This document shows positions 1-55,622 of a DNA stretch of 64,000 nucleotides, piece after piece; position 1 is the first letter of the stretch, and each line of letters opens with the position of its first letter. Below the pieces are notes generated by a model. The model saw only the letters and a program-made list of their open reading frames with translations. It was not told where the DNA came from and did not search any database. The stretch spans positions 21,638,001-21,702,000 of the forward strand of contig NC_135761.1 in assembly GCF_052425735.1 (NCBI RefSeq), written 5' to 3'. The translations under genes were made by a program, and so were the position numbers. The stretch is from Oculina patagonica. Taxonomy: Eukaryota.

Positions 1-726
1 TGTCAAGTGTGAATGGTTTTGATTACTCTGATTGGTTGACAAGTTACACAAACTTGGTAAAAAGAACTGAAAATTTGCTGGCAAAAAGAAACGTTTTGTA
101 ATGTTGAAATTATAGCTTTAATTTGAATTGTGCGTTTTTGATAAGTTAGTCAGTTGGTTAACTTAGCTATTTACATAGTATATGACCTTATGCAAAATTG
201 GTCGTCATTTATTTCTTTTGTTTGGTCGAGTTTCTGAAAATGCTGATGGCGACACTTAAAAATATATGGAATAATATGCTAAACTGAGAGGTTTCAGTGA
301 TTTTAGTTAAAAGGCTGCAGATTTGTGACTCGTTCAATTTTAAAAGATTTGTATGGAAAAAGCCACCATGGCCTGCGTAGCCTCGTTTTCATGTTTTTGG
401 CCGTATAATCGTCCCTGTAACTTCCCATTAGATAAAACTATAGCCTCGAAACTTCATACACTGATTTACTTTGACTTGATCTTTAAATTAAAGAAATGTA
501 ATTTTAATTGATGACTTTCGAGTCGAAAACGTTTTGTTTTTAAGAACTTTATAACTTTTATCTCTTTTTAGCCTTTTTAAAATTATTTTATGAGCAACAT
601 TATGACAACAAATGTAATTTTGTTGACAAATAATTCTTCTAGGAGCCGAGAATTAATTAACGGCAGCCATATTTGCATTGGGTCTTATTCTGATTTAAAA
701 ATTGATTTTGTTAATGTATTATAATA

Positions 727-862
727 CAGTTGAACCCCGGTAACTCGAACTCTGAAGGGAAACAAAAAAATGATTGAAAAGTGGGTCCAATTGAAATAGA
801 AGTTAGTTCGAGTTAGCGGGGTTGTTCGAGTTATCCGAGTTCGTGTTACCAGAGTTCTACTG
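727..862. mobile_element. Tc1/mariner-type MITE
   Basis: TA|CAGTTGAACCCCGGTAAC...GTTACCAGAGTTCTACTG|TA imperfect TIRs with TA TSD. Confidence 0.75.
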
Positions 863-3800: not shown

Positions 3801-3879
3801 GGCATTGCTTGGTTAACAAATTATGCGTTTTTGCTCCAATTATGTCAAAAATTATACTAGCACAATCCGCCAAGGCCTT

Positions 3880-4008
3880 CCTTCTTCGCCCCGATGGTGG
3901 TGAGAGGTCTGGGGATGACTTCAGAGGATTCTAGTCACGCGACGATCACGATCACGCACGGCATGCAGCAACGAAATTAACTGAAGGAGGAAGCTACAAA
4001 ATACATTG
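3880..4008 (+). other. Candidate 5' non-coding exon of the NLR-like gene
   Basis: Strong donor TTG|gtaagt at 4009; the coding exon has an acceptor tttcctttgcag ending at 8887, upstream of the ATG. The link and the 5' boundary are inferred. Confidence 0.35.
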
Positions 4009-6646: not shown

Positions 6647-8650
6647 TTAAGGGAGCAGTCATTAATTACTTGGGGGGAGGGCTGGCAAATTTTTGAAAAA
6701 GTGGGCTCAAAAATTGTGACCCTCTCCCAAATTGGAGCCCAGAAATTTGCAACACACCTCAAATCAGACCAAAAAATCCCCCCCCCCACCCACCTCTGTC
6801 CTTTGAATGAGCACATAAAAGAATAAACACAGTAAGGTGAAAACCATTGAAAGTAGTTCACTAGTTCTTAGGGAAGTTGTCTGCTTTCAGGAGGGGTCTG
6901 GGGGTATGTTCCCCCCCAAAATTTTCAGTTTTTTATCCTCTTAAATCACTTTTCTACGATTCTGAGTAGCAATATGATGGCCCTTTCAGAAAAGCTTCTC
7001 AGATTCCTGTTTTAACTCTTTCAGCTGTCCAAGCTATTCGAAGCAGGTAAAAGAGAAAAAAAGTAGCAAAATAGTGTGTTTCTAAGGGATCGGTCATAAA
7101 GTACAGGTGGGGTGGGGGTGGGGGCTAAGAAAAAATGAGGGTGGGTCACTGTTTTTCAACATGTCAAAACGGGTGGTCAGGAAAAAAATGCACTGCAGTA
7201 GGGGTGGGTCATGGTAAAATTATTTATTAAACAGCAACTATAATATTGCATAAATTCTATCAGAATGCCTAAAACAGCGTTTCTGAGGTTCCAAAAATAT
7301 ACATTTTCCTGGGGGAGCATTCCCCCAGAACCCCCTACTTTGTTATATACCTAACATCATTAACTCAAAACCACCAACTATTAGTATCCCTTTTAAGTGA
7401 CTGTACTACATCTACAATAGTACAAATATTCTGCCATAATGCCTAAAGTAGTATTTCTAAGTTTCTAAAAATCTCAATTTTTCTGTTGTTGCGGACGCAA
7501 ATGTTTCCCAGTTTAGCCACGCCTGAAACATATGTTGCGGAAACAAATTTTGCTTCACGGAAACAAAAAATGCTTGCCCCAAGTCAAAAACATTTTTGCT
7601 TCCCGGACACAAATTGTGCTCCCGAAACATATGTTGCCCAGTTTAGCCACCCAGGAAACAATGCTGAGTAGTTCATGCGCAGGCGTGCCAGTTTGTTCCC
7701 GGAACATTGTTTCCTAGTTTAGCCACCCGGGCAGCAGAACATTTTCCTTGCTTCCCGCTAATTTTGCCACCTAGGAAACATGACAAGGAACTTTCTGCAA
7801 CAATGTTTCCTAGTTTAGCCAGGCCTTGAGGCGAATAATAATGATGTATCATGATATAAATAGATATGATCAAAATAGTTTGTTTGAATTAAAATAATAT
7901 CATGCAAGAAATAATCATTACAGTGTGAGTTTGCAACTGATTGCGCAAGTCTCACGCTCAATGCACGAGGCTTGAGAAGCCTGAACCAAACAGCTGTTGA
8001 TCCTTAACACAAACAAGGCTAGGGGGTCCTGAGGAAAATTTTTATTTTGAGTCTCTGAAATGACTAGAAATGCATCTACGAATGTCAAACATGCTAAGAA
8101 GTAATCAATTTATACCAATGAAAAACAACCGTGATCAAACGTTTAAAGCCTCTTTGACCATTTAACAAGTCACTACTTTATAAGCCAATTGAGCGCCAAC
8201 GGATAGACCAGAAATTATTAAGCTTTTTTTGCCTATTGCTAGCTTGCTAGTAAAATAGTCAAAGCAGCTAACTTGCTAGTAAAATAAGTAAAGAAATGTT
8301 CCTCGCAGGGAACTTGAAGCATAAATGGTTAAAAAGTGGTTCTCATTACAGAAACTGTGCGTTGAAAGAGTTAACCATTCTAGTCATATTTTGAAGCTCG
8401 TGGCTCACTCCAGAAATCTTCACAACGAGTCACGTTCAAGATATATAAGATTCAGCTTGATAAACACGCGCTGTTTGCTGGTTAAGGGGCATTACCAAGA
8501 AGGAGATGGATAGTGGATTGAAGTAGCCTAAAATATTTAAAAAGTTTATTTGTTAAAACAGGTGACAAAAATTTGTGGCCCTCCCCATATCTTAGCTGTC
8601 CCCTCAAATTTGTCGCCCCTCCCCCCAATAATTAACGACCGCTCCCTAAA
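6647..8650. mobile_element. Composite non-autonomous TIR element (Harbinger-like AGGGA ends) with nested repeats
   Basis: TTAAGGGAGCAGTCATTAATTA ... TAATTAACGACCGCTCCCTAA; internal 7140-7480 resembles 5520-5830; nested GGCTAAACT repeats at 7490-7825. Confidence 0.55.
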
Positions 8651-8993
8651 TTCATCGTGGTTACAATTTTCTTCGTTTATTCGTTTTATTTTATAGCGTA
8701 AAAAACAAATGTTACTTTACTAAAAAATACTTTCTTACATTACACTACTTATACTTGTCCTTCCAAATTACACTCAACACTCAAAATCACGTCATCGCCA
8801 CATCCAATAGCAAAGGTCAGCCTATTCCAGCATCACTTTGTAGTTTGCCACTGCAGTAAATTTTGAAAAACACTGTTTCCTTTGCAGATGGTCTGACGTT
8901 TGGTCCAACTAGACTGTTTCAAGAAGGACTACTCGGATTTTACCGTGCTACCAACATTATTGAAGGATCTTGCAGACATTCGAATGCCTGACA

Positions 8994-11900
8994 ATGACAT
9001 TTTCTCCTGAACAACTGAACTTTTTCAAGTTTTCTACTGTTGTTATAGATGAATTCCCAGACGTCTTGCGTAAGGCCTTTGTCTTCATGTGGGACAACCG
9101 TGTCGCTTCCCCACCTGGCGTCCCAAAATGGGACGACTCTGTAACGGTTCAAAGCTTGTTCCTTGCAAAAGAGGGTGGTGTGAAGAAAGTTCCAACTCTG
9201 AATAAATCTTATAAGGAGTGAAACTGTACAGCTTTGTTCAAAGCCACTCTCTTTGCTCAAACCTTTGCCATGCCAGACGGGACTGGAGGTGTTTGCACGT
9301 TGGACAAGCTGTATGTGAGACCACGTGGTTTATCAACCGGGACATTTCACCACTCGGTTATCAGCCCCACTGGCAACACAGCTGAGACGTATGCCTTGGC
9401 GTTGGATCAGCTTCGCTTGCTGCGAAACACGCTTTGCCACCAAATCAGCACCCAAAAGATCGACAAGGCTACCTTTGTTCGTTATATATTGTTGGCAAAG
9501 GATGCCTTCACTGCACTTGGACAAGACACCACAAGGATTGATGACATTGGAAAGCTGGGCGAAGGGGACTTTCCCACAGCAAGGCTTCAGCAAGTTGAGG
9601 ACGAGTTGAAAAGGGAAAAGGATGCTGCCATAAAATTTAAACAGATCGACGATCATCTTATCAACATCGAGTTACAAGTGGAAGATGTCGGGTCTGACGT
9701 GAAAGATGTGAAAACTGACGTAACAGATGTCAAGTCACAAGTGGAACATGTTGGGGCTAACGTGGAAGATGTGAAAACGGAACTAACAGATGTGAAGACA
9801 CAAGTGGAAGATGTCGGGTCTGAAGTAAAGGAATTAAAGGCTGATGTTGTTGACATAAAAATGGCAATGCAAGCGGAAAACTCTAAAGGTGAGCTTTAAT
9901 TTGTAGTCTGGGTGAAGTAGTCTCGTGATCGTCGTGCATGTGTGCTCGAAGTGAGCATCTAATTGTTTCGGGTGTTTCATGGAACTCAGAGTACATACTT
10001 ATTTGCTTAATTTTATCGCCTGAGAAACCTTGTGTGGTCTTGGAAAAATAGTTAATTCTTCCAAATAGATGAGACTCGTACCCTCGGGACCCATTCATTC
10101 ATTGAAACCAGTGTGTGGTGACAGGCAAGTTGCAAGATCGACTGACAAGTATTCACTGTCACAGGGCTGTCTTTCAGACGGCATCGTTTAACCTATTTTC
10201 TTTTATGATTTAAGGTCCATCCGTTCCCGACTCGTGCATACCAGATAAAATACCGCACTTTGTTGGTCGCCAGGAAGAGTGCCTAGCAGTCTTAAATCAT
10301 TTAACAAATGGAGACACTCGACTGGTTGATGTCTGGGGTCCACCGGGATTTGGAAAGACGTCAGTGGCTGTTCAAGTGGCCCATCACTTGAAAGAGATGA
10401 AGATTCCAGTCTACTTTACATCTCTTCGCGGGATGAAAAGTAAAGATGATCTAGTGTCAAAGCTTTTAAGTATATTTACGGATGCTACACAGGCGTTTTA
10501 TGTCTCACCCTCTCATTGGCTCATCCAAAGTTTACAACAACTGGAGTATCCGTTTGTCCTTATTTTGGATAATGCTGACGACTTACTGGAATCTGGAGAT
10601 TCCAAACTGAAAGAAGACGTGCTCGGATTTACGAAGGAGATTCTTGCCCAATGCAGTCAAATCAAGCTTCTTCTCACGACTCGTGAATCTCTAGACTATC
10701 TGAGCCATAAGCTTTACATCCATCAAGAAAGAGTTGGTGTACTGGATGGAGTATCCTCTGTCAGCTTAGTGAAGTCCCAATTGCCCTATGTCTCAGACGA
10801 TGACTGCAGTTCCATAGTAAAGGTATGTGGACAAGTTCCTTTGGCAATGCGATTGATGTGTAGCATCATGATGGAAGAAAATGTTTCAATTACTGGGCTC
10901 TTAGAAGAACTGAAGGTTTCGCCTCTTGTTGAGGTTTTGGACAATGAAAATTTTTCCGATGATGCTCGACTGACAACCATAATCAACAAATCATTTGAAA
11001 GACTTAATTCCCAAGAGAGAGATGCGTTTGTGTCACTGGCTGTTTTTCCTAGCAGCTTTGGAGTGAAAGAGGCTACGGCTGTTTTGGATTTGAAGACAGT
11101 TCGACCGACCAAGAAAGTGATTAGATCGCTGAAACGAAAATCTTTAATAGATTGCAGTGAAGATGTTGAATCCTTCACAATTCATTCACTTTTGCGATCC
11201 TTCATTGACGAAAGAAGAATAGCTAACCAGGCAATTCAAACCATGTTTCATGCAGCACAACGTCGTTTCTACGACTATCAGATCACAAGTTTTGGCGTGG
11301 CTAATGAAAAATTTCTAACGGGTCATTCTACTGACGCATTTCAAGTTTTTCTTGGTCAACGGGAGAGCATCCTGCTGTCCCTTTTAGATGGAGCACAGGA
11401 TGACGCACTCTACCCCAAAGTTGTAGAAGTATTGTCGAAGGCCGAGTTATTTTTTTATGTGGTACTGTCCGATGAAAAGGAGTTATTCGACAGGGTTTAC
11501 TGCACCGCAGTAGAAGAAGCAAAGAAAAGTCAACGTCGCGACGATGAATGCAACTTGCTTGCTGCCAAGTCGTTTGGCTCCTTGGAAAGGTTAACCGTAA
11601 ACCGTCAAAGCTGGGACGAGTCCTTGATAGCTCGTATTCGTGATTCTACTGATAGCTGTCCAGCGAAGCATTTATGCTATCTTGGCGTCCATCAGCTGCT
11701 ATGTGGAAAAATGGACGACGGCATGTCGTCTCTTAGAACTTCTGTAGATCGTCTGAATAGTATTAACTGCGACGAAAAAGTTCTTAAGGTACTTTCCTGT
11801 CATGCACTTGCAGTCTGTTATAGAAAGAAAGGTGACAAGGAAAACGCATCTAAGTTTGAAACTTTCTGCGACAACGAGTGTAAGTCTACATCGTTGAGTC

Positions 11901-13501
11901 CTGTGGTTCGCTATGTCTTCTTACAAGACAGCTCTTCAGCTGATGAACCGACAGATTTCGCCAGTATTGTCGAGCGAGATGTTTTCTTTTTTGTAGTTAT
12001 GGCTAAAACATTATTTGCGCTTTACAGCAAGCTGGAGTTTGGAAAGCAGGCGAAAACTGAACTATCTTTAATGACCCGTCATTTTGTTGGACTGTACAAA
12101 GTTTTTCTTCCATTATCTGGCAAAGGAACGGTCGATGTTTCGATACTAGAGGCTTGTTGCCAGGTGCTATATAGTTTGAGCTGTTTTAAGGAAGCAGCGG
12201 AAGGTTATCAAATAATAACAGACAAACTTGAAAAGACGCCAGGAAACTGGTCTGACATATTCACAGCTCATGCTTACTTATTTTGCGGCTTAGCTCTGAA
12301 AGAACTGAAAGACCATGATGGAGCTTTCTATTGTTTAAAGAAAGCTTTAAATATAAGAAGGCGACTTTTACAAGAAAACAAGGATGGAACGCACGGCAAC
12401 AACATGGTCGGAGAGACTATCAAATCACTTGCGCACTGTTTGGAAATGCAAAAAAAAATCGATTGCGGTACTTTTGGTCACACTAACGATTTCAAAGCCA
12501 TCTGCGAAGAAATTAAAAGCGAACTTAAGACAATGGAAAAGATTTGTGGCGTGAACCTCGCTGAAATCGCAACAAATTACAACCAGCTTGGTTTTTGCTA
12601 TTGGCTTATGGATGACAACAGTGGAGCACTTGAGTCATATCAGCAGGCTCTAAAGATAAGAGAAGAGTACGTGGGCGATTCCGAAGACAAAGTATCATTT
12701 CTACAGAATATTGGAGCTGTGTATTCCAGAATGAATCGGAACAGTGATGCTGGCAAGGCATTGGAAAGTGCATTGGATCTGAGGAAATCGTTGGGGATTG
12801 AAGATCACGCGGATACCGCTTTTATTTACCATGAACTTGGGATGAACCATCTTGAGCTGGGTGAGTTGAGTGAAGCTCTTAATGCACATCGACAGGGCTT
12901 ACAGCTTAGAAAGAAACACTTAGGTGATCACCCCAGTACAGTTCAAAGCCTTACTGAAACAGGATGTGTGTATCTTAGGATGGGCGAGTATCAGGCTGCT
13001 AGAGAACATTGTCAGAAAGCTGCCGATTTATCAAGCACATTGCTTGGTGACCATGAAGATACCGCCTCTTCATTCTATTGCCTAGCTGTAGTGTACCTTA
13101 AAATGGGGAACTACAAGGGAGCTCTTGATGCTTGTCGTGAAGCTAGGAACATAAGATTGAAGCTATTAGGTGAACACGTGGATACAGCTGAAAGCCTTCA
13201 ATGTTTTGGATTCATATGTTTTAAGATGCGTGATTTTAAAAGAGCTGTCAGGTCCCTTGGGAGGGCGTCAGCGTTGAGATCAAAACTTCTTGGTGACCAC
13301 TTAGACACAGCACTGAGCTACCACTGCCTTGGTGAAGCGCAGATGTCTATGGGTGACTTCAGCGGTGCCATGGAATCTTTGAAGAAAGCTTTGAGTATTC
13401 GAGAAAAGGAAAAGCATTCATACGCCGCCGTAACTTCAGAGCTGCTAAACCGCGCCTATTTAGGCTACTTGATTAAATACGAATCAGCGTCTCAGCAATA
13501 G
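8994..13501 (+). CDS. NLR-like HEPN (DZIP3-like)-coiled coil-STAND/NB-ARC NTPase-TPR protein, ~1393 aa, with one in-frame TGA (possible null allele or young pseudogene)
   Basis: Exons 8994-9888 and 10215-13501; GT-AG phase-1 intron (AAAG|gtgagc...tttaag|GTCCA). ORFs 8970-9221 and 9234-9899 are in the same frame, separated by TGA 9219-9221. Motifs: HEPN RNTLCH, heptad repeats, FVGRQEE, Walker A GPPGFGKT, Walker B LILDNADD, LLLTTR, CGQVPLA, IHSLLR, then tandem TPRs (e.g. A..Y..LG....G....AL). Confidence 0.88.
9675..9857 (+). repeat. 63-bp (21-aa, three-heptad) tandem repeat, ~3 copies, encoding a coiled coil
   Basis: CAAGTGGAA recurs at 9675, 9738 and 9801; peptide QVEDVGSDVKDVKTDVTDVKS/QVEHVGANVEDVKTELTDVKT/QVEDVGSEVKELKADVVDIK. 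Confidence 0.9.
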
Positions 13502-13910
13502 ACCTTATTTGTTCAGGACGTTTTTTGCTGCATTTCAGACCATTTATTATGATATTGTTAAGAACTCTTGTTTTTTTTTAAAAAAAAATTTCAAGAGTGA
13601 TTTTTGGATGGGCAAAACCGGAACAATTCTGTAAACTAAGAATATCACTTGGTCTGAAATGGGAAAACAAGCAACTAACGGAGGTCTGTTCAAAAACGCA
13701 CAGAGAGCGGAAAGATCGTTTGAACACTGCGTTGAGTGATCCCAGTAATATGTTCCTCAGCTGTTACTTGGAAGAGTACTCAATTCGGTATGATCTATCC
13801 GAGGCAGCCACAAGTCTGGAAATAAGCTATATATTCTAGTGTAATTTTTAGGGAGGGCCACAGGTTTGTTAGCTTTGCTATTTAGTGTTACCCTCATTTT
13901 AAATAAAGTC

Positions 13911-13950
<40 letters not shown>
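13911..13950. repeat. (TTA)n microsatellite
   Basis: Read directly. Confidence 0.95.
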
Positions 13951-13952
<2 letters not shown>

Positions 13953-14249
13953 ATGCTTTCTGGGCTCTGAAACGTTTCCCAATCGTCAAAAAGGGAGGTT
14001 TTTTAGAAGTTTGTTGCTGTGGTCTAAAACGGAATGTAACTAAAGCGCCAAACGTGCGTAAGCCAATCATGCATAATTGGTTTTGCCTCTAATTAGTCGC
14101 CAAAATAAACAGCGTGATTACGCCGATTGGTTTACAGGTTGCACAAGCTAAAACTGTTTGTTTACGTGGACAACATCTGAAAGTTAACTTATCCAGTTAA
14201 ACGGGCAAAAAGAAACGTTTAGTTCAAATTATAGCTTTATAAGTTAAAC

Positions 14250-14547
14250 CGGGTGTTGCTAGACTGAGGATTCAGCAGACGGCGGAACCTCTGGAACCCA
14301 TAATTTAATTTAAAAAAAATGAAACTAAAAAAACCCTAAAAATCCCTAATATAACACTATTCGCAAATTCGTTTAAGATTACGATAAAAAAAATGTTGGT
14401 GACAAGGATGCTAAACATATATTTTTTTAACGTTATTTTTAGTCTCGTAAACGAATTTTCGAAAAGTGTTAGGGATTTTTTTAGTTTTTTTTTTTACATA
14501 AAATTATGGGTTCCGCGGTCTGCTGATCCTCAGTTTAGTAACACCCG
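14250..14547. mobile_element. MITE with long imperfect TIRs
   Basis: CGGGTGTTGCTAGACTGAGGA...TCCTCAGTTTAGTAACACCCG, flanked by direct GTTAAAC; the TSD/TIR boundary is ambiguous (5-8 bp). Confidence 0.8.
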
Positions 14548-15010
14548 GTTAAACCTAGTTATGACGAAATTAATCATTGATAAAATTACATTACATGTAT
14601 AAGGCAGTTGTCATGTTGGTGTCCATCTCTCGGGCACCGATAGAATTTTACAAGAAATGAAGTAGATTCTACCTTCAATATAATTAGCTTTCATCCCAAA
14701 GCTTTTTGGATATCACTTGTAAATACTGAAATATAAACTTTGAATAGGTTCCGTCGTTCATAAAACGTTCATTTGGGGCAACACAAATTTTAAAACGCGT
14801 TATTTTAGAAACGAAGCAATGAATCTATACCATAACTTGCATTGAGATTGTTTTTTATTATGTCTAAAATTTATAAAAGGATAGCTCAGAGTAGGATTAA
14901 CAGTTTAGATTTTAGAAGGAGGGCAAAAGTTTCAAACTAGCTCAGTAAATATCGGTGACGAAGCGGTAGTTTTTGTGATAGCGGTAGTTTTTGTGATAGC
15001 TCAGTAAATA

Positions 15011-16267
15011 GAGCGGTTTTCACTTGAGTGTCGAAAGTACTTTGCGTTTGCATTGGATTTGCGTTCACTACGCTTAGTGATTGGTTTAAAAATTTCGCGC
15101 CACTTTCTCGGCCAATTAGGAGTAAAACCAAAACCAATCGCGACTAGCCTGCGAATACAGCCGCCTCTCATTCGCGTCCCGCAACGAAGAGCGAAACACG
15201 AAGAGAGACGTCTGCGATTCACGGCCAGAAATTCCATACTGATGACGTAAATCTGTCCAGAATCCGGACAGGAGCGCTGATTGGTCAGCTAGTTAATTTA
15301 CATAATGTATGCGAAATATAACACTTCATTACTCGAACGGTAAAAAACCGGATGTTATTGCGGACTAAAAGTTGACCGGGGGAAGGATCGTAAAACTACA
15401 CCGAAGCTATACTATAATATCTATAATTCATATGTAATTGGGAAACAAAAAGAAACTGCTTTATAACAAGATGAACGACCTCAAAGATGTACAGAAAGGA
15501 CGCGCCACAGCGACCGTTAAAAATAGATCAATTTTGTCACCTAACTTTTATTGTTGACATAAAGGCAGCCAAACAAGCAACAAAAATGTGAAATACAGAT
15601 AACCTGAACGACCTGAACCATCCACAACCAAAGAATAAATGCTACAGAAAAACAGAATTTTAATTTGACAGACAGCGGGAAAGAAGAAACTAACTCAGAA
15701 GAATTGTTATGATCGTTGCGGTATCGGTATTTACGGCCCAACACCTCCGAGAGTTGCGCTCAAGTTCCAAAACAATGTCATCTAGTGATTTCGCAGCTTA
15801 TTTTTCCAAATTTTACTAATGTGCAACTCGTATAGGGATTTCCAATTTTCGCGATGAAGTTGTCCGGTGTAAATGACCCCTAAATGTGTCCTTGACTGCC
15901 TTGAAAGTGTTTGTGATCAAGCAAGTAATGTGCGGCTGAAAACAAAAAATAATTATGCAAGACCAACTGCGTGTGGTGTGGGAAATCTAATTAGTGGTTA
16001 ACGTCATCAGTATGGAATTTCTGGCGGTGAATCGCAGACGTCTCTCTTGGTGTTTCGCTCTTCGTTGCGGGACGCGAATGAGAGGCGGCTGTATTCGCAG
16101 GCTAAATCGCGACTCGCTCGCGCACGTTTTCCCGCGCTTCGTGCCAACTACATGTATTTGCTTCGAGTTTTGATTGGTTCCCTGGATTGTCTGTGTCGTT
16201 TGTGATTGGTCAGAGTAATTACTTTGGTTTTGGTTTTGGTTTTACGACACTCAATTGAAAACTGCTC
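15011..16267. mobile_element. TA-TSD MITE (outer element of a nest)
   Basis: TA|GAGCGGTTTTCACTTGAGTGTCG...CGACACTCAATTGAAAACTGCTC|TA; an empty copy of the target site lies at 14941-14965. Confidence 0.85.
15145..16104. mobile_element. Nested non-autonomous DNA transposon, ~105-bp TIRs, 9-bp TSD
   Basis: TAGCCTGCGAATACAGCCGCC...GGCGGCTGTATTCGCAGGCTA; TSD AATCGCGAC at 15136-15144 and 16105-16113. Confidence 0.88.
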
Positions 16268-16779
16268 TATCGGTGACGAAGCTGTAGTTTTTGACTCCAA
16301 CACCACCGACATATTAATTATCTGCAAAGACCAATCTCTTTCTTTCCATCCATGTAGCTTTTACAATTTCTTTTATCCTTCACTTTCGAGAACTTGATGG
16401 CTATGAGCTCACTTTCATTTCAGCTCATTTAATGTTCTAGTCTTGGTCAGCCGAGCTGCAAGAATGGTAGACAATGCTTAAACTCTCGCTCCTTTTGACT
16501 TGTATACAATGTATCATGTTCAGCTCAGTGCTCTTACAATTTTCCACGACAAGTAACTCTCAACGGGCCGAAAGTGTTCGTGTAGGACTCCGAATCAAGG
16601 GCTCGTCCCAGGGCTTTGTAGTGCGTGCTTACGTACGTACATACGGACAGCCGTGATAACCAAATTTTCGGCTGGATGGTTTTACCAAATTTTCTTAGCT
16701 GTGGGGCTAATATTGAAAGGGATGAGATGAGTCATTCAAGACAATTACTACCGAAACTGGTAGATCGCGAATTTTGACT

Positions 16780-16888
16780 TCGGCGCCAAACGTCAGCGAT
16801 TTTGGTCACGTGACTTTGCTCGTCAAACCAAAAAGGTGAACGCCCATGCAAAGCCACGTGACCAAAATCGTTGACGTTTGGCGCCGAA
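16780..16888. repeat. Short inverted repeat or MITE fragment
   Basis: TTCGGCGCCAAACGTCAGCGATTTTGGTCACGTG ... CACGTGACCAAAATCGTTGACGTTTGGCGCCGAA. Confidence 0.75.
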
Positions 16889-18416
16889 ATCAGTTCTCAC
16901 GCGAAGAACGAAAGGTAATGATACAGTCAAACCTCTCCTTACTAATAACTCTGTAATACGGATCCTTCCCTATCACGAGCAGTCACTTGGTCCAGAGATC
17001 GAAAGTCATAATTATAAACTCTACCTCGAACCTTTATAATACGAACACCTCCATAAAGTCAAACCTCTTTATAACACGGACACGGCCAAAGGTATAGGGA
17101 AGAGTGTCCGTATTATGGAGGTGTTCGTATTATAGAGGTAGAGTTTGTACTGACGAACTATCAATGGTCTCTTTGAGTTAAGTGAACTGTCTGTCTGCAC
17201 TTGTACTCTGATTGAGTACAAGTGCACCTGTCAAAGGGCGGTCCACAGGAAACCGCACTAAGGTGAGGACAGGTTCAGCCGTTTTTTCTGTACAGGAATT
17301 TTTTTGGAAATTGCCCAACACCTCCCCTCCCCCCTCAAAAAAATAATGGTCCGTCCCTAATGATCCTTTTTTTCTTGAAAGGCTCTTTGTTCACATAAAG
17401 CACACTTTAATCTTTTGCAAGAGTTCAGCTGAGTTACGTGCTGCTGTAAAGTCCATTCGCAGAAGTCGCAATAAAGTTTGTCGTTTGCAAATTAAGATTT
17501 GTTTTCGGTGTGTAATAGGAAATTTGAGCACTTTCTTCCTCTTTAGACCCCTAAATGATGAGTAAAACTATTTTCTTTAGTTCATAGTCTATAATTAAGA
17601 TCCACGCGATGTCAGTAGAACGAACAATATAAATAAATAACTAACGATAATTTGCATTGGCATTTCCACAAAGTGGCCCTTCATCCACTGACACTGTAAA
17701 AGGAAACAAATGTTGCAACTCGAACAGAAAACAGTGTTAAAAATCTTAACTAAGCTGTTTACACAAAGTGTGGAGTAGCTAAATTCGGGATCAAAGAAAA
17801 CCAGTCCAGCACCCTAACCACTAGGCCACGCTGCCTCCTTAAAAAATTGACGTATAATGGGTACTGCCGACTATTAAAGCAGTAAACCGGCATTAAAAAC
17901 TACTGTGATCCATGGTCTGGTTGCGATTTTCTTAAAAAAATAACGTTAATCCAGGATTAAAAGTCAATCCAGCTTTTTTAGTCTTCAAGAAAAAACTGTT
18001 ACTGCAAATAAACGTGTTTTATGGACTGGATTACTTCAAAATGAAAAAAAAAAAAGGTAAAAAAAGATCAAATCGTAACCGATTTGATTTCTAAAATGAA
18101 CGCTAATCAAGGATTAGCTTCAATCTTGCTTTGATTAACCAGGTCAAGTACATGAGACTGAAGTAGCCACTTTCCACTTTCCTTGAATATTTTAGGGATG
18201 TAGAAGGACTTCTTGAGACCTGTTGACAATCATTTAAGATTCACGAGACATTCCAAAACTTTCAGAACTTCCCAACAAACATATTCCACGGCTCAGCATA
18301 GCTTGAAATCGAGACGTTTACAAGTTGTTACCCATGAAGGTTTGTCTGTCTCACGTCGTAGTTTTGACATGTAGGTACAAGCACACATTTCGTCCACTCG
18401 TGTTTGGTAAGCAACA

Positions 18417-41000: not shown

Positions 41001-43594
41001 TCCTCCAATCCTGGAGCCTTCTCGTCAGTCGGCGAAGGAATATAATTATTTCTGAGAACACAGTTTTTATAACTGTGGTAATAGTTTTCTAGGTCCTCGT
41101 AATGTCCAGGGTTTTCAAGCTGCCTCCTAAAAAAATAAAAGGTTTCAAATTATAATAATAAATGTAACCAAAAGATTGATGAGCATTAGCAACTTTAAAC
41201 ATCAATTTTTTACTGATGCTGCACATTTCTTAGATCTATGAATTTGTAGTTTAATCTGAATAAATAAAAATTTTAGCTAACCAGAATAAACAAACCTCTT
41301 TCTTTAATTGACGGGCCTTTTGCCATTTGCTCCTGCTACCTACACCCTAGATGACAAAATTCCACTCACTACAAACTTGTACCCTTTACACTCCTGCCCC
41401 ACAGCCACTTTTATCCCCTTTCCCAAGGTTCTCAACCATTAACTTGAAGTAAGAGCTGATGTGGCTTCCTCTCTTTATATAGTACTTAATTTAATATTTA
41501 AGGGTGACCTTACCTGACTTCCTCTTCAAGAAATGACATGTGTTCATGCAGAGATGTGTACTTTGCACAAAGAATCCCCACAGACTTCATTCTGGCACCT
41601 CTCTCTGCCACATTATCAACAGCTATTCTTTCATAACAACTTAGTCCATAGAGACCATCTCTGGTTTTGAAGTATCTAAAAGTAGTAAAAAAGATTAGGT
41701 CAAGTCTGCTTTCGAAACCGGGCTAACATCAGCACCATCAGTGAGCAAATCTCCCGGTGGCGCTGGAAGTTCATCGGCCAAATCCTCAGAATGGATCCAA
41801 GCAAACATCCCAAGACGGTATTAATATGGGCCCCAGAGGGAAGGCGAAGTCGTGACAGACCGAGGGAGACTTGGCGAAGAACTGCCGAAAGAGAAAGAGC
41901 GGCTTTGGGTTTCGGCTCATGGAACGAGGCAGCAGTGGCTGCCCGCGACCGTGCAGCATGGCGGAGGAGAATGGCCGGCCCTTTGCCCACTTAGGGCTTT
42001 GGTCATAAGTCAAGTCAGTAAGTCAAGTCTGCTTTCGAGCCAAGTGGCCTATCAGGCTGGAGCTTATCCTGGTTTCAGTAGCATGAAGCAGCTAAGAGTA
42101 TTTCTTCTCCCCCCTGGATGGGATGCTAGTCCACCCAGTGTCAAACAGTCATAACGTAAATTTATGAGCTAAACCAAAAGCGTTATAGATTTTGAAGATA
42201 CGAGAAAGGAGTAAAGAACAGTTTAAACTTACATGAAGTCTTTTGTGATAGTGTGTGAGCCACTGGCCAGGGCTTTGAATTCCACACCAGTCAAATCCAC
42301 AGATCTTGGGTGCTTCCATTCTATTTCATTTCCTTTAATTAAAAAACAACAACAACATTCAGTTCTATTGATCGGTCGATCAAGCACAACAGAAGTACAG
42401 ATTCAGCCAACCGCCTCATGACATTAAGTGATCCTCCTGGCTTAAAAAAAGTTGTTTGGATGAAATAGGGTCTTAGACAGGGGACTGGAACCTAACTCAA
42501 AAATCAAATGGTGGACTATTTGCTGAACACTATAATTGTTGAGAAAATGCAGAGAAATGATGTTTCACAAACCAAAGTATACCCAGAGATAGTTCTGAGA
42601 GAAAGTATCCTTTATAACTAAATTTTGCGTTGACTCAATTTAAGTTTTAATTGCTAAAAACTTTGAATATGCATTTCTTTATGATAAATTCTGTTGACAG
42701 CTAACCCGGGCAGCTAACCCGCAAGCTACTGAAAGATTGCCAACATATTACTAACTGTTGGCCGACAGTCGGCCAACATATATGTTTACATTCACAGGTG
42801 CAAATTCTGACAGTTGCCTGATTGTCGTCTGACTAGTGACCATTTGTCATCAGACTGTTGGCTGTTTTACATGTACGTGGGCCGGCTGTCTGCCGACAGC
42901 TGGCCAAAAGTAGACTGACAGGTTATTCTGGAAGCTGTTCACTTTTACTGGGAAATTTTATGGCTGGTCACACAAAAGCATCGTATGACTAATTAAGTGT
43001 ACAACAAATAAAACAGTCTGCCTTCTTAATAAAACAGGTCTTTATTTAACATAGGTCATATATTTGTATAAAAGTTTCAGGTCTGAAACTCAGATCACTG
43101 TGAGAATTCCACGAACTTTTCAGAAGGGTTTGATTAATTTATTTTAGCCAAAAAAGGGTTTTCCAAGTAATCTGAGGTTTGAACTTTTGAGCAAAAGGGA
43201 GAAAATATTTTGGTTAGATTAAGATAAGGGAATAACCGAAGCAGCTGAAGAATTGCCCATATTGAAGATAAAGACCCTTACAACCACTGTGAACTGAATC
43301 CACTGAAGACCATGTAGAATTAGGTACAACAGAGATTCATTAAAACTATCATATGCTACCTTGAAAAGTCTTACCTCTCCTAGTATCGAATTGCACGACA
43401 AAAACAGCGATTATGAGATCAGGAACAGCTCTTTCCTGTTCAGACGAGTTCCCTCTGGTGTCCTGAAGAAACGAAAAATTTTCACCAGACGTAATATGGT
43501 CATCTGTTAGTGGTAGGGATGGAAGACCTTGTCTTGGATCGTACGATGTATCAGGAATTTCTTCAAAATCGACAAGACATGAATCGTCCGCCAT
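35074..43594 (-). CDS. DENND11: DENN domain-containing protein 11 (LCHN/KIAA1147-like), 9 exons, 432 aa
   Basis: Exons 43594-43375, 42332-42233, 41675-41514, 41126-40985, 39509-39371, 38918-38793, 37944-37797, 35999-35943, 35278-35074; all GT-AG and in phase. Motifs [65 protein letters not shown]. Confidence 0.9.
36490..36835 (+). mobile_element. 3' fragment of a non-LTR retrotransposon (RTE-like C-terminus)
   Basis: Peptide [11 protein letters not shown]...[22 protein letters not shown]; TA-rich tail. Confidence 0.8.
39655..39880 (+). mobile_element. Degraded RTE-like LINE 3' fragment
   Basis: Remnant peptide RLRWIGHI...[10 protein letters not shown] with stops. Confidence 0.55.
41716..42021 (+). 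mobile_element. 5'-truncated RTE-like LINE with (AAGTC)n tail and 17-bp TSD
   Basis: Peptide [11 protein letters not shown]...[19 protein letters not shown]; TSD GTCAAGTCTGCTTTCGA at 41699-41715 and 42022-42038. Confidence 0.85.
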
Positions 43595-43896: not shown

Positions 43897-46800
43897 ATGG
43901 ATCCAAAGTTTGAAGATGAAAACAAAGAAAATGAGTCTAAAATTTATTTAGACTACAATGCAACGACTCCACTAGAACCATCAGTACTGACAGCAATACA
44001 TGATGCTTTGCGCGATGCCTGGGGAAATCCCAGTAGTTCTTACACTGCGGGCAAGAAAGCAAGTCACGTGATTAAGCAAGCTCGCAGCTCAGTGGCTAAC
44101 ATGATTGGTGCTTTGGAAAGTGATATTATCTTCACATCAGGTGGTACCGAGGCAAACAACATGGTCATTCATTCAGCTTTGGAATATTTCCGTGAATTTC
44201 ACAAGGAAAGAGGAAGTTGTAATGTTGATGTAAAACCTCATGTGATCACATCAAATCTTGAACATGACTCTATTCAGCTTCCACTCCTAAACCTTGAAAA
44301 GCTAGGCAAGGTTGAGGTGACACTTGTTGCTGCCTCGCAGGACTCTGGCGCAGTAACAGCAGAAGCAATATTGCAGGAAGTTAGACCCAGTACATGCCTG
44401 GTCACCGTCATGATGGCCAACAATGAAACAGGGGTAATTCAGGTAACTGAAGGTTTTTCCCCTATTCCTCCAAGCCTCCCTACCCCACCCCACTTGTTTA
44501 AGCCACCTCCAGTAAGCTCTTTTTTATAACCTTTCCCAACCCTCTATTAGGTATTAGAAGGTTGTCGAATGGTTAATGTGTGACTTTGTGAGATGGCGAG
44601 CCTGATGTCTTTTCTGCGAGCGCAAGACCATTTTAGCCTCGCAAAAGAAATGAAGACTCCGAGAAGGCCTCAAATAAAAATTGGAGATGACAAGACTTCT
44701 GAAATTTGGCTAAACTTTTGGGAGACATATTTTTTGAAGGACCATTCACCACCCCTTATTGGCGCCAATACACAGAAAGGGTTTTGTTCCTGGGTTATGC
44801 CCCAGGGGCATGCTGCTGTAGCAAAGCTCCTCTGTGTGTACCAACGATGTCATGATATTATTTAGCCCCGAGAGCAAAATTCCACCCTGCAAAATGGGAA
44901 CATGATCCTAGGACAGATGGAATCCAATTTTATAAACCCTTCAGTTTATTGAACCTCCTGAGAACTCAAACCAAACATCATTTCACTTCTCCCAGTATAA
45001 TAACATTTCTCTAATTCCTCGCTTTCTTAATCCTGCTGGGTTTGAGAAATCTGATTTCCGGTGTATGTATATATCAATTGTAATCTGTTTTTCGTTTTTT
45101 AATCATCAGCCAATTGAAGACATTGCTAAAGCCATAAGAAGCCTAAACAAGAGTCGCTTATCTCAGAAAGTCCCCAGGATTCTTGTCCATACAGATGCAG
45201 CACAAGCTATTGGTAAAATCGAGGTTGACGTGGACGAGCTGGGAGTGGATTACCTCACGGTTGTTGGTCATAAGTTTTATGGACCCCGAATTGGTATGAT
45301 AACAGAGGGATACCTATGGAAAAATCTACATCTACATCCTGGGGGGTTGGAAAGGGAGGCATGCTCCCATCACTGCAAGACATTAAATAAAAAATAAAAT
45401 ACAGGGGGTGGGAGGGGGGGGGGGAGGGTTGTAAAACACCTTAAAAAATATATATAACAAAGTATGATAATATTAACTTGACAAGACGTCAGGCTTCAGT
45501 ATACATCGTTTTATTGCGACAAGTCTGTTTCGTATGGACCTAAATTAATAGGTCCACACTCATCAGGCAACTTCATTAAAGTTGCCTGATGAGTGTGGAC
45601 CTATTAATTTAGTTCCATACGAAACAGACTTGTCGCAATAAAACGATGTATACTGAAGCCTGAGTACCTCTTGTCAAGTTAATATTATTTATGCTCCTCG
45701 ATCAAATGAGTTGAGCGCTCTTCAAAATACATTCTTCTCACGAAAGAAATAATTTATAACAAAGTATGTATATAATTTAAAAAAGAAAATTAAAAAAAAT
45801 TAAAATACCTATGCATCAAGTTAATTTAGATTAAAAAATAATTAGAACCTAATTAAAATGTCATCAGTTGTATAAATGGGTGCTGGTCGTGCCATAATAC
45901 AGAAAATCCCCTCCTCAGACGGAGGAGACCGACTGGCCTACCTGTATATTAAGATCTCCAACAACCCTCCAAGTTAAGACCATTTTAGTCGCCATGGCGA
46001 CTAAATTGGAACCAAAGTCGCCAGCCTGGCGACTAAAATTGAGAAGAAGGATTGAAAGCATGAGCTTAATTTAGCGACTAAAATTTTTCACTGGCGAACA
46101 AACCTGAGCAGTCGGTGGCCAAATGGCCACTAAGGAAAAAAATAAACTTGCAGGGTTGTCCAAATAAGACAAATAAATACCCCATCTATTTCACTGGCAT
46201 AAGAGTGTATATCCTTATTAGAGTATACCTCTAGATCTCTCCCATCCACAATATTTTAACATCTATTCATTCAATAATCTTTTAACAGTATTTTTACTGA
46301 ATATTGTGCATAACAGGAGCCCTGTATGTAAGAAATCCAAGAGCAGATACTCCCCTTCACCCCATGTTTTTTGGAGGAGGTCAAGAGAGAAACTTCAGAC
46401 CAGGAACAGAAAACACTGGTATGATAGCTGGATTAGGACAGGCCTCCCAGTTAGTGGTGGACAACTTGGAACAATATCGTGAAAACATGAAAATGGTTAG
46501 TGACATTAGAGTCTTGGAATGGGCGGAGAAGGACTCCTGTACTTAAACAGATAATGATGCTTGTCATCTTGCTTATGGATGTAAATTTCAGATTTTGGTT
46601 TTCACTTATATAGAGTGGTGTTCAAAGCAAAACAAACAAATTTCTTTTAGCCATCATGCTCTTATCTAGGGTTGCACATGAAGAAATTGGTATACAACAA
46701 ACTTGCGCCATGCCCATATTAGCCTTCTGTAGGTGTTTAATTTAAAACACTAGGTGAGCATCCACAACTTTTTCTTATGGGAGTCCCCACCTCTGACCCA

Positions 46801-49344: not shown

Positions 49345-50280
49345 CTAGGCATTTCCTCTGTAATACAACACGGGGTTTATACCAGAGCAAAGAGTGGCGA
49401 AAACATAGAACATGGGCCTCACAAATAGACTGAGTTTCATACCAAGAATCATCGATAAACCCATTGCAAACGCCAGGGGAATTATTAACAAAACAAGTAA
49501 ACAGACAACATGGCGAGTAGTCGCTGCTAGCTGGCGCTCGATTGCGTTATTAGCGGTAGCAGGATTTACCCGAGCGCTTTCCTCCATTACCTGTGCGACT
49601 GCATTGTTATGCTTACGAAGGGTCACAAGAGTTAATATCTGGACACCTACAACCAGACAAGAGAAGAAGATGATTAGACTCGTTTGAAAGATCTCGAGCG
49701 CTATGGGAGGAAGCACCTCCATTTTCCGTAATATCACCATTAAAACTGATGCCAGCCACACTCCGCTGCAAGCAAAAATAGCATGCTGCATCGTGACGGT
49801 CGCTTTGTACCACATTGGTTTAGCGACTGCTAAGTAGCGATCCACGCTTATCACTCCAAGATTACCCAGCGTAGAAAACAAACTTAAATTGAAAAAAACA
49901 GGCATAAAAGACGACTTCCAATCGCTAGGATTGGTACACGCCTTACCAGAAAGCAAGTCATTGACCCTGTTTCTGACAAACATGGGCGTCACCAGTCCTC
50001 CCCACACGACATCAGTCAGAGTCAAACTACACAGCAACAGAAACCCTGGCCTGATTCGAAGGCCACCCCTGAGAATGGCAATCAGGACTAACCCGTTTGA
50101 CAGGAAACACCACAGACCTAACAATGTGGTGACCGGTACGAGAAAAAAGTTGGAGTAATAAAGAAAGTGAAGCTGGGGAGTATGTGAGATTCCAGAGGAA
50201 AAACACGATCGCTTCGCTTGCTCCGTTGCCAGGTCTGGGAAAGCAATCTGCGTGTCATTTGTAGTCAAGTTCAGCTTCAT
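49345..50280 (-). CDS. Class A (rhodopsin-like) GPCR, copy 1, C-terminally truncated (311 aa)
   Basis: Seven hydrophobic segments; SN, LTLTD, ISVDRY, INPVLY. TAG at 49347-49345 replaces the CAG of the paralogs; the ancestral frame continues to TGA at 49308-49306. Acceptor ttttcacag lies just upstream of the ATG. Confidence 0.88.
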   Translation of the reverse strand: MKLNLTTNDTQIAFPDLATEQAKRSCFSSGISHTPQLHFLYYSNFFLVPVTTLLGLWCFLSNGLVLIAILRGGLRIRPGFLLLCSLTLTDVVWGGLVTPMFVRNRVNDLLSGKACTNPSDWKSSFMPVFFNLSLFSTLGNLGVISVDRYLAVAKPMWYKATVTMQHAIFACSGVWLASVLMVILRKMEVLPPIALEIFQTSLIIFFSCLVVGVQILTLVTLRKHNNAVAQVMEESARVNPATANNAIERQLAATTRHVVCLLVLLIIPLAFAMGLSMILGMKLSLFVRPMFYVFATLCSGINPVLYYRGNA

Positions 50281-51176
50281 GTTCACGCTGTGAAAAGAGT
50301 GAAAAAGTTTTGTTACACAAACACACTAGGGCTCAGGCTTAGAATTTGGAGTCACATCAATGCATTCCATATATTTCATTTCATGCTTTCTTCTAGTGAT
50401 AGATTAATACCACGTCCCTCCCTGCTACTAGATTGGATTTGTGTTTGGTCATCCCGAATTCAACTCCTCCACGCTGTGTAAATAGCTAGCTGGTCAGCCT
50501 TCTGCCAGTTGGGGCTTTAACAAGTTCGTGTTTGATTCTCATTGTTTATTTATTTGTTTATTTTTCACATTTCATTTTTGTTGCTATGCTTTTTCTGCTT
50601 TGGACTTGAGTCGCATCAATATAATCTGCTTAGCTTACATCCTTCCTCAGCAGAGAAGAAAGTTACGAGACTCGCTTATATCATGTCGCACAGATGAATA
50701 TAGGCTTTCTGTGCTCCAAGGCTTCTTAGGTCTTCTTATTGCGCATCTCAATTCTACACTGGTTCGTTTTTACGTTTTTGGACAACTTACCTTTTACATG
50801 GTTAATGGTTATGTGAGCACTAACGAGGGTTTCCAAAAACGTTTACTTCACTCCACTGCAAAATTCTTCAGTGATGCAGTCGAGCTGCAATACCTGATGA
50901 ACATGAAGATTTAGACTATTTGTTTGACCCATGTCTATCAATTTTATGGGAAATATTACGCTTAAATTTGCGTTGAGTTTTGAAAGAAGTTTCACATCAC
51001 GGATACTTTTACAAGACATGACCATGCCGCTATGTACCCAAAAGATTTAAGTCATTTAAATTTTTCAAGACAGTTTGAACGCGCAAATATTCTATATGCA
51101 CTCAACAAAAATCAATTCAACTTTCTTTCGCATTTTCAACATAAAACAGACTAAATTCAAAATGTCTAAACCTTAC

Positions 51177-53607: not shown

Positions 53608-54647
53608 GTAAGGTTTAGACATTTTGAATTTGGCCTTTTTCATATTGAAAATGCGAAAAAAAGTTGAATTGATTTTTAATGCGGTAAAAATAGATAATTT
53701 GCGCGTTCAAACTGCCTTGAAAAATTTAAATCTTTTTGGTCGATAGCGGCATGGTCTTGTCTTGTAAGAGGGGTCCGTGATGTGAAACTTCCTTTAAAAC
53801 CCAACGCAAATTTAAGCGTAATATGTTCCATAAAATTGATATAAAGATGGGTTTTTAAAAACGTCAAACAAATCGTCTAAATCTTTATGTTCATCAGGTA
53901 TTGCAGCTCGACCGCATCACCGAAGAATTTTGCAGTGGAGCGAAGTAAACGTTTTTGGAAAGCCTCTTTGTCGTTAGCGCTCACATATATAAAAGGTAAG
54001 TTGCTAAAGTTGTCCAAAAACGTACGAACGAACCAGTGTAGAATTCAGATGCGCAATAAGAAGACATAAGAAGCCGTGGAGCACAGAAAGCCTATATTCA
54101 TCTGTGCGACATGATATAAGCGAGTCTCGTAACTTAATTCTCTACCGAGTAAGGATGTGAGCTAAGCGAAGATAACAGATTATCTTGATGTGACTCAAGT
54201 CCAAAACTGAAAAAAAGCATAGCAACAAAAAAATGAAATGTGAATATTCTTGCAAAGCCTCTCAATGTTGTCGATAAATAAACAAAATAATAAATAATTA
54301 ATCACTTTATATAAGCGTCGATTTATTTAGCACTGCTGTGCTAATTGAAGACACTGTAAATAAAAAAATAAACAAATAAATAATGAAAATCAAACATGAA
54401 CTTGTTAGAAGCCCCAACTGGCAGAAGGCTGACCAGCTAGTTATTTACACATAGTGGAGGAGTTGAATTCGGGATGACCAAACACAATTCCAATCTAGTA
54501 GCAGGGAGGGATGTGGTATTAATCTATCACTAGAAGAAAGCATGAAAGAAAATGTATTGAATCAGTGAGAAGACTCCAAATTCTAAGCCTGAGCCCTATT
54601 GTGTTTGTGTAAAACAAAACTTTTTCATCTCTTTTCACAGCGTGAAC

Positions 54648-55622
54648 ATGAAGCTGAACTTGGCTACAAATGGCACGCAGATTGCTTTAGAAGACCTGGA
54701 AATGGAGCAAGCGAAGCGACCGTGTTTTTTCACAGGAATCTCACAAACTTTCCAGCTTCAATTCTTTTATTACTCCAGCGTTTTTCTCGTTCCGGTCACC
54801 TCTTTGTTAGGTCTGTGGTGTTTCCTGTCAAACGGGTTAGTCCTGATTGCCATTCTCAGGGGTGGCCTTCGAATCAGGCCAGGGTTTCTGTTGCTGTGTA
54901 GTTTGACTCTGACTGATGTCGTGTTGGGAGGGCTGGTGACGCCCATGTATGTTAGAAACAGTGTCGAGGAGTTGCTTTCTGGTAAGGCGTGTACCATTCC
55001 TAGCGATCGGGACTCGTCTCTTATGCCTGCATTTTTCTTTTTATGTTTTTATTCTACGCTGGGTAATCTTGGAGTGATAAGCGTGGATCGCTACTTAGCA
55101 GTCGCTAAACCAATGTGGTACAAAACGACCGTCACGATGCAGCATGCTATTTTTGCTTGCAGCGGAGTGTGGCTGTCATCAGTTTCAATGGTGATATTAC
55201 GGCATGTTAAGGTGCCTCCTCCCAAAGCGCTCGAGATCTTTCAAACGTGGTTCGTAGTCCTCTTCTCTTGTCTGGTTGTAGCTGTCCAGATATTAACTCT
55301 TGTGACCCTTCGTAAGCATAACAATGCAGTCGCACAGGTAATGGAGGAAAGCGCTCGGGTAAATCCTGCTACCGCTAATAACGCAATTGAGCGCCAGCTA
55401 GCAGCGACTACTCGCCATGTTGTCTGTTTACTTGTTTTGTTAATAGTTCCCCTGACGTTTCTAATCGGTTTATCGCAGATTCTTGGTACAAAAATCAATC
55501 TATTTGTAAGGCCCTTATTCTATCCTACCACCACTCTTTGCTCTGGTATAAACCCCGTGTTGTATTACAGAGGAAATGTCCAGATTAGGGACGGAATCAC
55601 TAAACTTTTGAAATGGCAGTGA
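54648..55622 (+). CDS. Class A GPCR, copy 2 (324 aa)
   Basis: 7TM pattern, DRY, NPVLY, helix-8-like IRDGITKLL; single coding exon after an acceptor ending at 54640. Confidence 0.92.
   Translation: MKLNLATNGTQIALEDLEMEQAKRPCFFTGISQTFQLQFFYYSSVFLVPVTSLLGLWCFLSNGLVLIAILRGGLRIRPGFLLLCSLTLTDVVLGGLVTPMYVRNSVEELLSGKACTIPSDRDSSLMPAFFFLCFYSTLGNLGVISVDRYLAVAKPMWYKTTVTMQHAIFACSGVWLSSVSMVILRHVKVPPPKALEIFQTWFVVLFSCLVVAVQILTLVTLRKHNNAVAQVMEESARVNPATANNAIERQLAATTRHVVCLLVLLIVPLTFLIGLSQILGTKINLFVRPLFYPTTTLCSGINPVLYYRGNVQIRDGITKLLKWQ

Follow-up and report, generated by a model that had tools for sequence, protein, structure and literature searches.

Penelope-like elements (PLEs) provide the closest described parallels to a 288-bp insert with one hammerhead ribozyme motif on each strand, which lies in an intron of a selenocysteine lyase (SCLY) gene of Oculina patagonica; the gene is contained in a stretch of 64,000 nucleotides (NC_135761.1, positions 21,638,001 to 21,702,000), here called the window, in whose coordinates all positions are given. 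PLEs of the Hydra clade are mostly cnidarian, have been noted in Acropora millepora, and are short elements with a C-terminal endonuclease (EN) without CCHH, a CxCX5C linker, CxxC/CxH motifs surrounding the conserved E and N, DKT instead of DKG, hammerheads of the canonical kind, and (TA)n targets (PMC8557442). Inverted 5'-truncated copies and one-sided tails are described features of PLEs (PMC8557442, Fig. 2; tails also in PMC11167929). The minimal hammerheads of PLE pseudo-long terminal repeats (pLTRs) were found with relaxed descriptors rather than canonical models, and motif pairs ~100-700 bp apart on opposite strands are reported (PMC4209133); these ribozymes are weak and need either a dimer (PMC4209133) or the help of protein (PMC11167929). 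The protein of PAc, a PLE of the anole, cuts and extends each of the two target strands; cDNA synthesis begins at two neighbouring internal sites that follow the hammerhead closely, the optional tail corresponds to the sequence between these sites, and insertion in vitro does not require the hammerhead (PMC11167929). Retrozyme motifs are also abundant in stony corals, with >6000 in 16 families in A. millepora (PMC7229834).

The window insert is a further example of a known PLE insertion product, and it is very probably a recent, apparently segregating 3'-terminal hammerhead segment of a PLE whose protein relatives carry Hydra-clade motifs. Hydra-clade elements (PMC8557442) are matched in the cnidarian host, a C-terminal GIY-YIG-like domain with CxCX5C and CxxC/CxH, DKT in a homologue with motifs like those of reverse transcriptase (RT), a hammerhead near the 3' end, (TA)n targets, heavy 5' truncation, an adjacent inverted copy, and a tail at one end; the protein motifs (CxCX5C, CxxC/CxH, and DKT for DKG) are present in relatives and not in the window copy itself. 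The locus differs from them in holding only ~110 + 176 nt of the 3' end with no open reading frame (ORF), in a tail of 66 nt versus the quoted 30-40 bp, and in that the RT of its family was not recovered. Like the minimal hammerheads of PLE pLTRs (PMC4209133), the motifs have a full core, a long helix II (9 bp here versus 7-8 bp), a weak helix III, and a short helix I (5 bp here, 4-5 bp there), whereas helix III, with 3 bp and a 4-nt loop, is non-palindromic; in related copies the helix III region is ACAGAACUGU and nearly palindromic. PAc, a Poseidon element of Anolis (PMC11167929), likewise has a hammerhead just upstream of two RT start sites that define tailed and untailed insertions and an AT-rich target, and its protein nicks and extends both strands; it comes from another host and another clade of PLEs, the two ends at our locus lie ~66-70 nt apart, and the mechanism there is one that we infer. 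Animal non-LTR retrozymes (PMC7229834) share the type I hammerhead in a small non-coding repeat, but are same-strand tandem repeats releasing circular RNAs, whereas the insert consists of mirror copies with one hammerhead per strand.

Anatomy of the insert and its motifs

The initial annotation described twin hammerheads in a hairpin flanked by a target-site duplication (TSD) within an SCLY intron, as minimal motifs with a weak stem III and a stem II mismatch in the sense copy only, and attributed them to a Penelope-like source; all of these points stand. The insert (45467-45754) is bounded exactly at its edges by the 14-bp direct repeats (Table 1), one of which abuts the left arm and the other the 66-nt unpaired extension. 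A repeat search recovers the inverted arms as an inner block (45489-45573/45579-45663, 85 nt, 99%) with an outward continuation (45467-45489/45666-45688, 23 nt, 96%), and in a direct alignment the arms, of 107 and 110 nt, are 2 substitutions and one 3-nt indel apart. The insertion target, ATATATATAAC..., is AT/(TA)n-rich.

The plus-strand ORFs of the host gene encode a NifS-like protein that, among PDB entries, resembles SCLY of rat and human most closely (E 2e-54 and 2e-51), with cysteine desulfurases at ~1e-21 to 1e-25, and by these matches the gene is identified as selenocysteine lyase. The splice borders agree with the intronic position: the upstream exon ends at G45293, followed by GTATGA, and the next exon starts at 46317, after CAG. 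The insert lies 173 nt into the intron, and its plus-strand hammerhead is in the SCLY sense. A tRNA scan of 45000-46600 found none, so the insert is not a tRNA-headed element.

Table 1. Coordinates of the insert, its parts, and the intron that holds it
Feature	Position in window	Strand	Remarks
SCLY intron holding the insert	45294-46316	+	GT...AG, 1023 nt; X32 RNA contig match ends at 45294
TSD, left copy	45453-45466	.	TATAACAAAGTATG, exact 14 bp; short (TA)n run just before
Left arm, inverted 5'-truncated copy of the element's 3' region	45467-45573	-	Outer end 45467 is the family 'short' 3' end
Hammerhead motif, mirror image	45513-45572	-	Stem II perfect over 9 bp; cleavage predicted between 45518 and 45517
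Palindrome centre	45574-45578	.	5 nt; joint of two 5'-truncated copies, 7-10 nt upstream of each CUGAUGA
Right arm, forward 5'-truncated copy, mirrored by left arm	45579-45688	+	Inverted-repeat search and arm alignment
Hammerhead motif, sense to SCLY	45580-45639	+	Predicted cut between 45634 and 45635
One-sided 3' extension ('tail')	45689-45754	+	66 nt, unpaired; ends at family 'long' 3' end ...GAAATAATT
TSD, right copy	45755-45768	.	TATAACAAAGTATG; abuts the 66-nt extension

Each strand has a type I layout, with three helices around the core and an opening at helix I, and all conserved core positions are present on both strands (C3-U4-G5-A6-N7-G8-A9, G12-A13-A14, A15.1-U16.1, and H17, which is not G). 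On the plus strand, helix I pairs 45581-85 with 45635-39 (5 bp), the core is formed by CUGAUGA (45586-92), GAAA (45621-24), and a GUC triplet ending at C45634, helix II joins 45593-601 to 45612-20 (9 positions and 8 pairs, with the mismatch C45600 x U45613), and helix III pairs 45624-26 with 45631-33 (3 bp, loop GACU). The minus-strand motif has a G-C pair in place of the mismatch, which is private to the sense copy; at 45613, G is present in every family contig. With a loose pattern (CTGATGA...GAAA...GTC), the 64-kb window yields 2 matches versus 0.18 expected, and a full descriptor, requiring the core, at least 4, 4, and 3 bp in stems I, II, and III, and H17, also gives 2 matches, both in the insert, with 0 in 300 block shuffles; shuffles with relaxed stems yield a mean of 0.007 descriptor matches. 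A repeat search found no same-strand tandem hammerhead repeats at the insert, only short two-copy direct matches of 10-26 nt that include the TSD, and hence there is no circular RNA monomer to be released.

A multicopy family with Penelope-like features

Contigs of four public runs, among them X8 and X2 with other species labels, were aligned to window 45200-46000. Summed contig depth over the insert is ~700-5700 in X1, versus 35 for the exon, and ~900-17500 in X8, versus 94; this excess of 20-160 times in the DNA runs of two species cannot be taken as a number of copies, but demonstrates that near-identical ones are numerous. Metagenome contigs, scanned by pattern, contributed 22 coral-metagenome loci with the same hammerhead, 77-90% identical to 45579-45754 (77-85% save one short match). 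The 5' ends of family copies vary and, counted from CUGAUGA, lie at -7 to -13, -99, -119, -166, -335, and beyond -500, while the 3' ends form two classes, 'short' at ~+97 to +104 (...CTTGTGAAGTT) and 'long' (...GAAATAATTT); in the window, the left arm ends at the short end (45467) and the right copy at the long end (45754). The flanks are often (TA)n (loci L001 and L013), with L004 beside a (TATC)n run, target duplications are 13-15 bp at L016 and L018, and head-to-head copies occur at L010, L016, L018/L021, and L019. Variable 5' truncation, an inverted truncated neighbour copy, a tail at one end, duplications of variable length, and AT/(TA)n targets fit the insertion signature of PLEs.

A near-perfect palindrome with a target duplication could also be produced by a fold-back or miniature inverted-repeat (MITE) type of DNA transposon that holds a hammerhead-like sequence by chance, but the ends are asymmetric, with the 66-nt unpaired tail on one side only, and the arms are the 3' end of copies whose 5' truncation falls at many different positions and which run on upstream into a GIY-YIG ORF. 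The duplication length also varies over 13-15 bp, and none of the family copies seen combined symmetric ends, identical from copy to copy, with a duplication of constant length. We regard a DNA transposon as exceedingly improbable.

The coding connection of the family is provided by copies that extend further upstream. L002, L008/L017, L011, L014, and L016 each contain the C-terminal part of an ORF, which reads in the same direction as the hammerhead and precedes it by ~200 nt. A phmmer search with the L002 ORF found 6327 relatives, mostly short and matching at the C-terminus, which fits 5'-truncated copies. The CxCX5C, CxxC, and CxH motifs are present in proteins P0001 and P0104 and in the L006 ORF, as CNCRxxxxxC, CNLC, and CPH/CRH. 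P0119, a 46%-identical homologue of 696 aa, has ADKT and the RT-like motifs FDVESFYPSI, MGS, YRDD, and FLDV upstream of the endonuclease, and atlas look-alikes of P0119 combine RVT_1, GIY-YIG, and HTH_animal.

Locus L006 (1-1163) is composite, with a forward hammerhead copy cut at +67 and joined to a piece in the opposite orientation; in that piece, a divergent hammerhead unit precedes an open frame of 293 codons with a GIY-YIG-like domain. An interpretation of this locus as a hammerhead unit running straight into an endonuclease ORF, which would imply an N-terminal EN, was rejected; the ORF part matches no other locus at the DNA level. L006 joins two differently oriented pieces and may be a nested insertion or an assembly chimera.

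Family sequence is also contained in RNA-run contigs of a related species, with 106 nt on one arm (3 differences) and 145 nt across the tail. This shows that some family copies are represented in RNA libraries and implies nothing for the SCLY locus.

The insertion looks heterozygous in the X1 run, and hence polymorphic and not fixed, because filled and empty contigs in this one run each have about half of the exon contig depth of 34.9. The filled-junction contig spans 45711-45822 with 0 differences at a depth of 15.6; the empty-site contig passes straight from 45445 to 45751, without the insert and without one copy of the repeat, at a depth of 12.9. In X2, 45448 and 45792 are linked within one contig by 18 other letters, and the insert is absent there. 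The empty contig of X1 is argued to derive from the SCLY locus because it keeps a G-rich segment (to 45445) that is missing in other copies of the repeat that flanks the insert.

That flanking repeat is a moderately repeated family represented at 45323-45424 and 45785-45866. In its other copies, 45393 is joined straight to ~45785-45794, such that the window copy has an extra G-rich/AT-rich segment of ~78 nt, inside which the PLE stub landed. An imperfect direct repeat of 26 nt (45377-45402 and 45783-45808) is also present. Further downstream, 45956-46140 is occupied by a very abundant repeat, with a summed contig depth of ~1.9e5-7e5 versus 35-94 for single-copy exon and a depth of ~8e3-1e4 in an RNA run; it is built from short palindromic TTTAGTCGCC...GGCGACTAAA modules, and many contigs break at 45960-45962.

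Formation of the palindrome

The outer ends and the shared inner end of the insert fit two-strand priming from two RT start sites. By analogy with PAc in vitro (PMC11167929), a PLE RT/endonuclease would prime cDNA on both nicked target strands, with synthesis starting at the two alternative internal start sites of the element, the short one for one arm and the long one for the other. Both cDNAs would then extend as far as the same 5' terminus on a short template RNA, or a template switch would occur at that point, and the two would be joined head to head, 7-10 nt upstream of the hammerhead.

The position of this joint recurs in the family, as 7 of the 11 independent metagenome loci with a determinable 5' end start at -7 to -13 from CUGAUGA (TCGTTGAAGTTGC...), namely L003/L022, L005, L010, L013, L015, L018/L021, and L019, and both window arms do likewise. 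Locus L019 also has an 18-nt mirror arm, with a centre identical to that of the window palindrome. The clustering of 5' ends suggests that an RNA really begins at this position or that templates are switched there. Tentatively, the short copies, including the window palindrome, may be full-length cDNAs of a short leader RNA starting ~13 nt upstream of the hammerhead, with synthesis from one or the other of two fixed RT start sites inside it, although we consider this possible rather than probable. If true, symmetric twin-hammerhead palindromes would be an in vivo footprint of two-strand priming with run-off at one RNA 5' end, the in vitro result with the lizard PLE would extend to corals and to genomic insertions, and a hammerhead mini-element would be defined that stands midway between PLE pLTRs and retrozymes.

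The same clustering could also reflect, rather than a randomly truncated PLE, a discrete non-autonomous hammerhead mini-element of ~115 or 185 nt, always beginning 12-13 nt upstream of CUGAUGA and ending at one of two fixed points, of which the locus would be a head-to-head dimer; such an element could be a leader-only cDNA from a promoter-proximal RT start site copy, or a retrozyme-like passenger of PLEs. A preprint (10.64898/2026.07.22.740005) that argues for the derivation of animal retrozymes from PLE pLTRs lends this some support. However, other family copies run on upstream, colinear into the endonuclease ORF, and by sequence the short units cannot be distinguished from 3' ends of PLEs; the pattern used to select the loci demanded an intact hammerhead, and the insert lacks the same-strand tandem repeat from which a circular RNA monomer would come. 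A mini-element of this kind is accordingly a doubtful interpretation, on a par with the leader RNA, and we retain a 3'-terminal PLE segment as the preferred reading of the insert.

Several observations count against that reading or parts of it. The first concern the hammerhead call itself, for which the comparison with Rfam hammerhead models gives a divided outcome: Hammerhead_1 (RF00163) reproduces the register in an end-to-end alignment (model 1-45), but at 11.5 bits versus a gathering score of 34, Hammerhead_3 (RF00008) scores 15.7 bits versus 48.5, and in a whole-window scan no Rfam model reaches its gathering score anywhere. The low scores, the length of helix II, and the shortness of helices I and III fit the minimal hammerheads of PLEs, which differ in helix sizes from canonical type I (PMC4209133); in our reading, the Rfam models do not cover these variants. 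The helices are also nearly invariant in 20 distinct family sequences, a family too uniform for covariation, and the motif call is one from sequence, resting on the descriptor and family membership and not on covariation. The metagenome set was picked by a pattern fixing the core and helix II and hence provides no test of those positions. Among the 20 sequences there are a few pairing-compatible changes (C>U, A>G) and four that break pairing, and N17 is C, U, or A, never G; when the window is compared with the metagenome family, one A-U to U-A exchange is seen in the helix II extension. Run-wide variants of at least 10% are located in loops II and III and on the 3' side of helix II (4 of 5 helix II changes are pairing-compatible), and hit 0 of 13 core bases (p ~0.07 by chance alone).

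A second set concerns the coding link. The GIY-YIG match of the upstream ORF is sub-threshold (19.8 bits versus a Pfam cut-off of 22.6), Pfam and PDB sequence searches of P0119 gave no RT match and no RVT_1, and no copy of the window's exact family was traced to an RT gene, the longest related copies reaching the endonuclease end only. L023, the only readable P0119 contig, extends beyond the ORF by 168 nt on the upstream side and by 11 nt on the downstream side and has no recognisable hammerhead, hence no RT-EN-hammerhead link in one record. The RT link is incomplete, depending on motifs and look-alikes in a 46%-identical relative. As regards polymorphism, the left 91 nt of the empty-site contig depart from the window by 4 letters and 12 gapped positions, and the contig may conceivably derive from a close paralogue, the flanks being repetitive. 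Finally, the two-strand priming route is drawn from one in vitro lizard PLE system.

Consequences for SCLY

The fold predicted for the 222-nt palindrome has an energy of -175.5 kcal/mol, and the best predicted fold that keeps the sense hammerhead reaches -96.0 kcal/mol, such that the ribozyme-competent fold is ~79.5 kcal/mol less stable, with a stem II pair probability of 5e-19 in the ensemble. On either strand, the complement is transcribed ahead of the motif. These energies agree with the suggestion in the initial annotation that the long hairpin masks the ribozyme fold. Cleavage of the SCLY pre-mRNA is predicted to be very unlikely, because the motif is masked by the hairpin, PLE minimal hammerheads are weak, and neither strand offers a tandem partner. 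The hammerheads are part of the biology of the element itself and are passengers at the SCLY locus, where the sense motif, judging from the predicted folds, most likely does nothing beyond adding a long intronic hairpin.

Amniote intronic hammerheads HH9 and HH10 are single, efficient, and strongly conserved across species. The window copy is like them in being a sense-strand hammerhead in a host intron; it differs in being polymorphic, transposon-derived, and masked by its own complement. A conditional switch on SCLY was initially proposed as one possibility; in such a switch, the sense hammerhead would cut SCLY pre-mRNA once the hairpin opens and so regulate selenium metabolism, and the sense strand does have a complete core. 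Against such a switch are the energy gap and the prior transcription of the complement, the private stem II mismatch, the lack of a tandem partner for a type of motif reported to need a dimer or protein help (PMC4209133, PMC11167929), and the restriction of a polymorphic insertion to one lineage. The proposal is not upheld, the insertion being apparently polymorphic in one sample, absent at the matching place in a second coral species, and one of many mobile copies, and we consider a switch highly improbable. An AATAAA after the cut site was part of the same annotation and is present, at 45637-42, but a special role for it is not supported: throughout the family it consists of the conserved 3' strand of helix I and the bases next to it, and the plus strand of the AT-rich window contains 108 such hexamers (1.7 per kb).

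The hairpin could alternatively act as a functional source of double-stranded RNA (dsRNA), with ADAR editing or Dicer/Drosha-like small RNAs altering SCLY splicing or dosage on the carrier allele. The 107-bp nearly perfect stem (-175.5 kcal/mol) makes dsRNA, ADAR, and small interfering RNA fates physically plausible as far as the predicted fold goes, and family sequences are present in the RNA-run contigs of a related species; Rfam microRNA-precursor models also match, all sub-threshold and as a generic long hairpin only. However, the few RNA differences seen are not enriched for A>G, the RNA contigs may stem from other copies or DNA carry-over, and the insertion is not fixed, so that there is no conserved role. 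A functional dsRNA source is thus improbable, if less so than a ribozyme switch. The microRNA-precursor matches, together with small nucleolar RNA matches, all sub-threshold in E-value scans, were rejected as genes and attributed to the palindrome.

Elsewhere in the window, two closely related ORFs of 313 and 326 codons resemble seven-transmembrane (7TM)/G protein-coupled receptors (GPCRs) and are inverted with respect to each other, ~4.4 kb apart (49345-50286, minus strand; 54642-55622, plus strand). Two short plus-strand ORFs (36570-36809 and 41791-41994) resemble the C-terminal tail of an RT of the long interspersed nuclear element (LINE) type (...RETWRRT...) and look like other retroelement fragments.

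For SCLY, the insertion is probably of no consequence, as a segregating transposon copy in an intron. It provides a clean natural example, with an apparent empty allele, of a head-to-head one-tailed PLE product, and its two outer ends coincide with the two 3' end classes of the family, which bears on PLE integration. Hammerheads in coral introns are to be read as PLE debris unless conservation indicates otherwise, and heterozygous colonies could show whether a 107-bp intronic hairpin alters splicing, editing, or small RNAs in a cnidarian.

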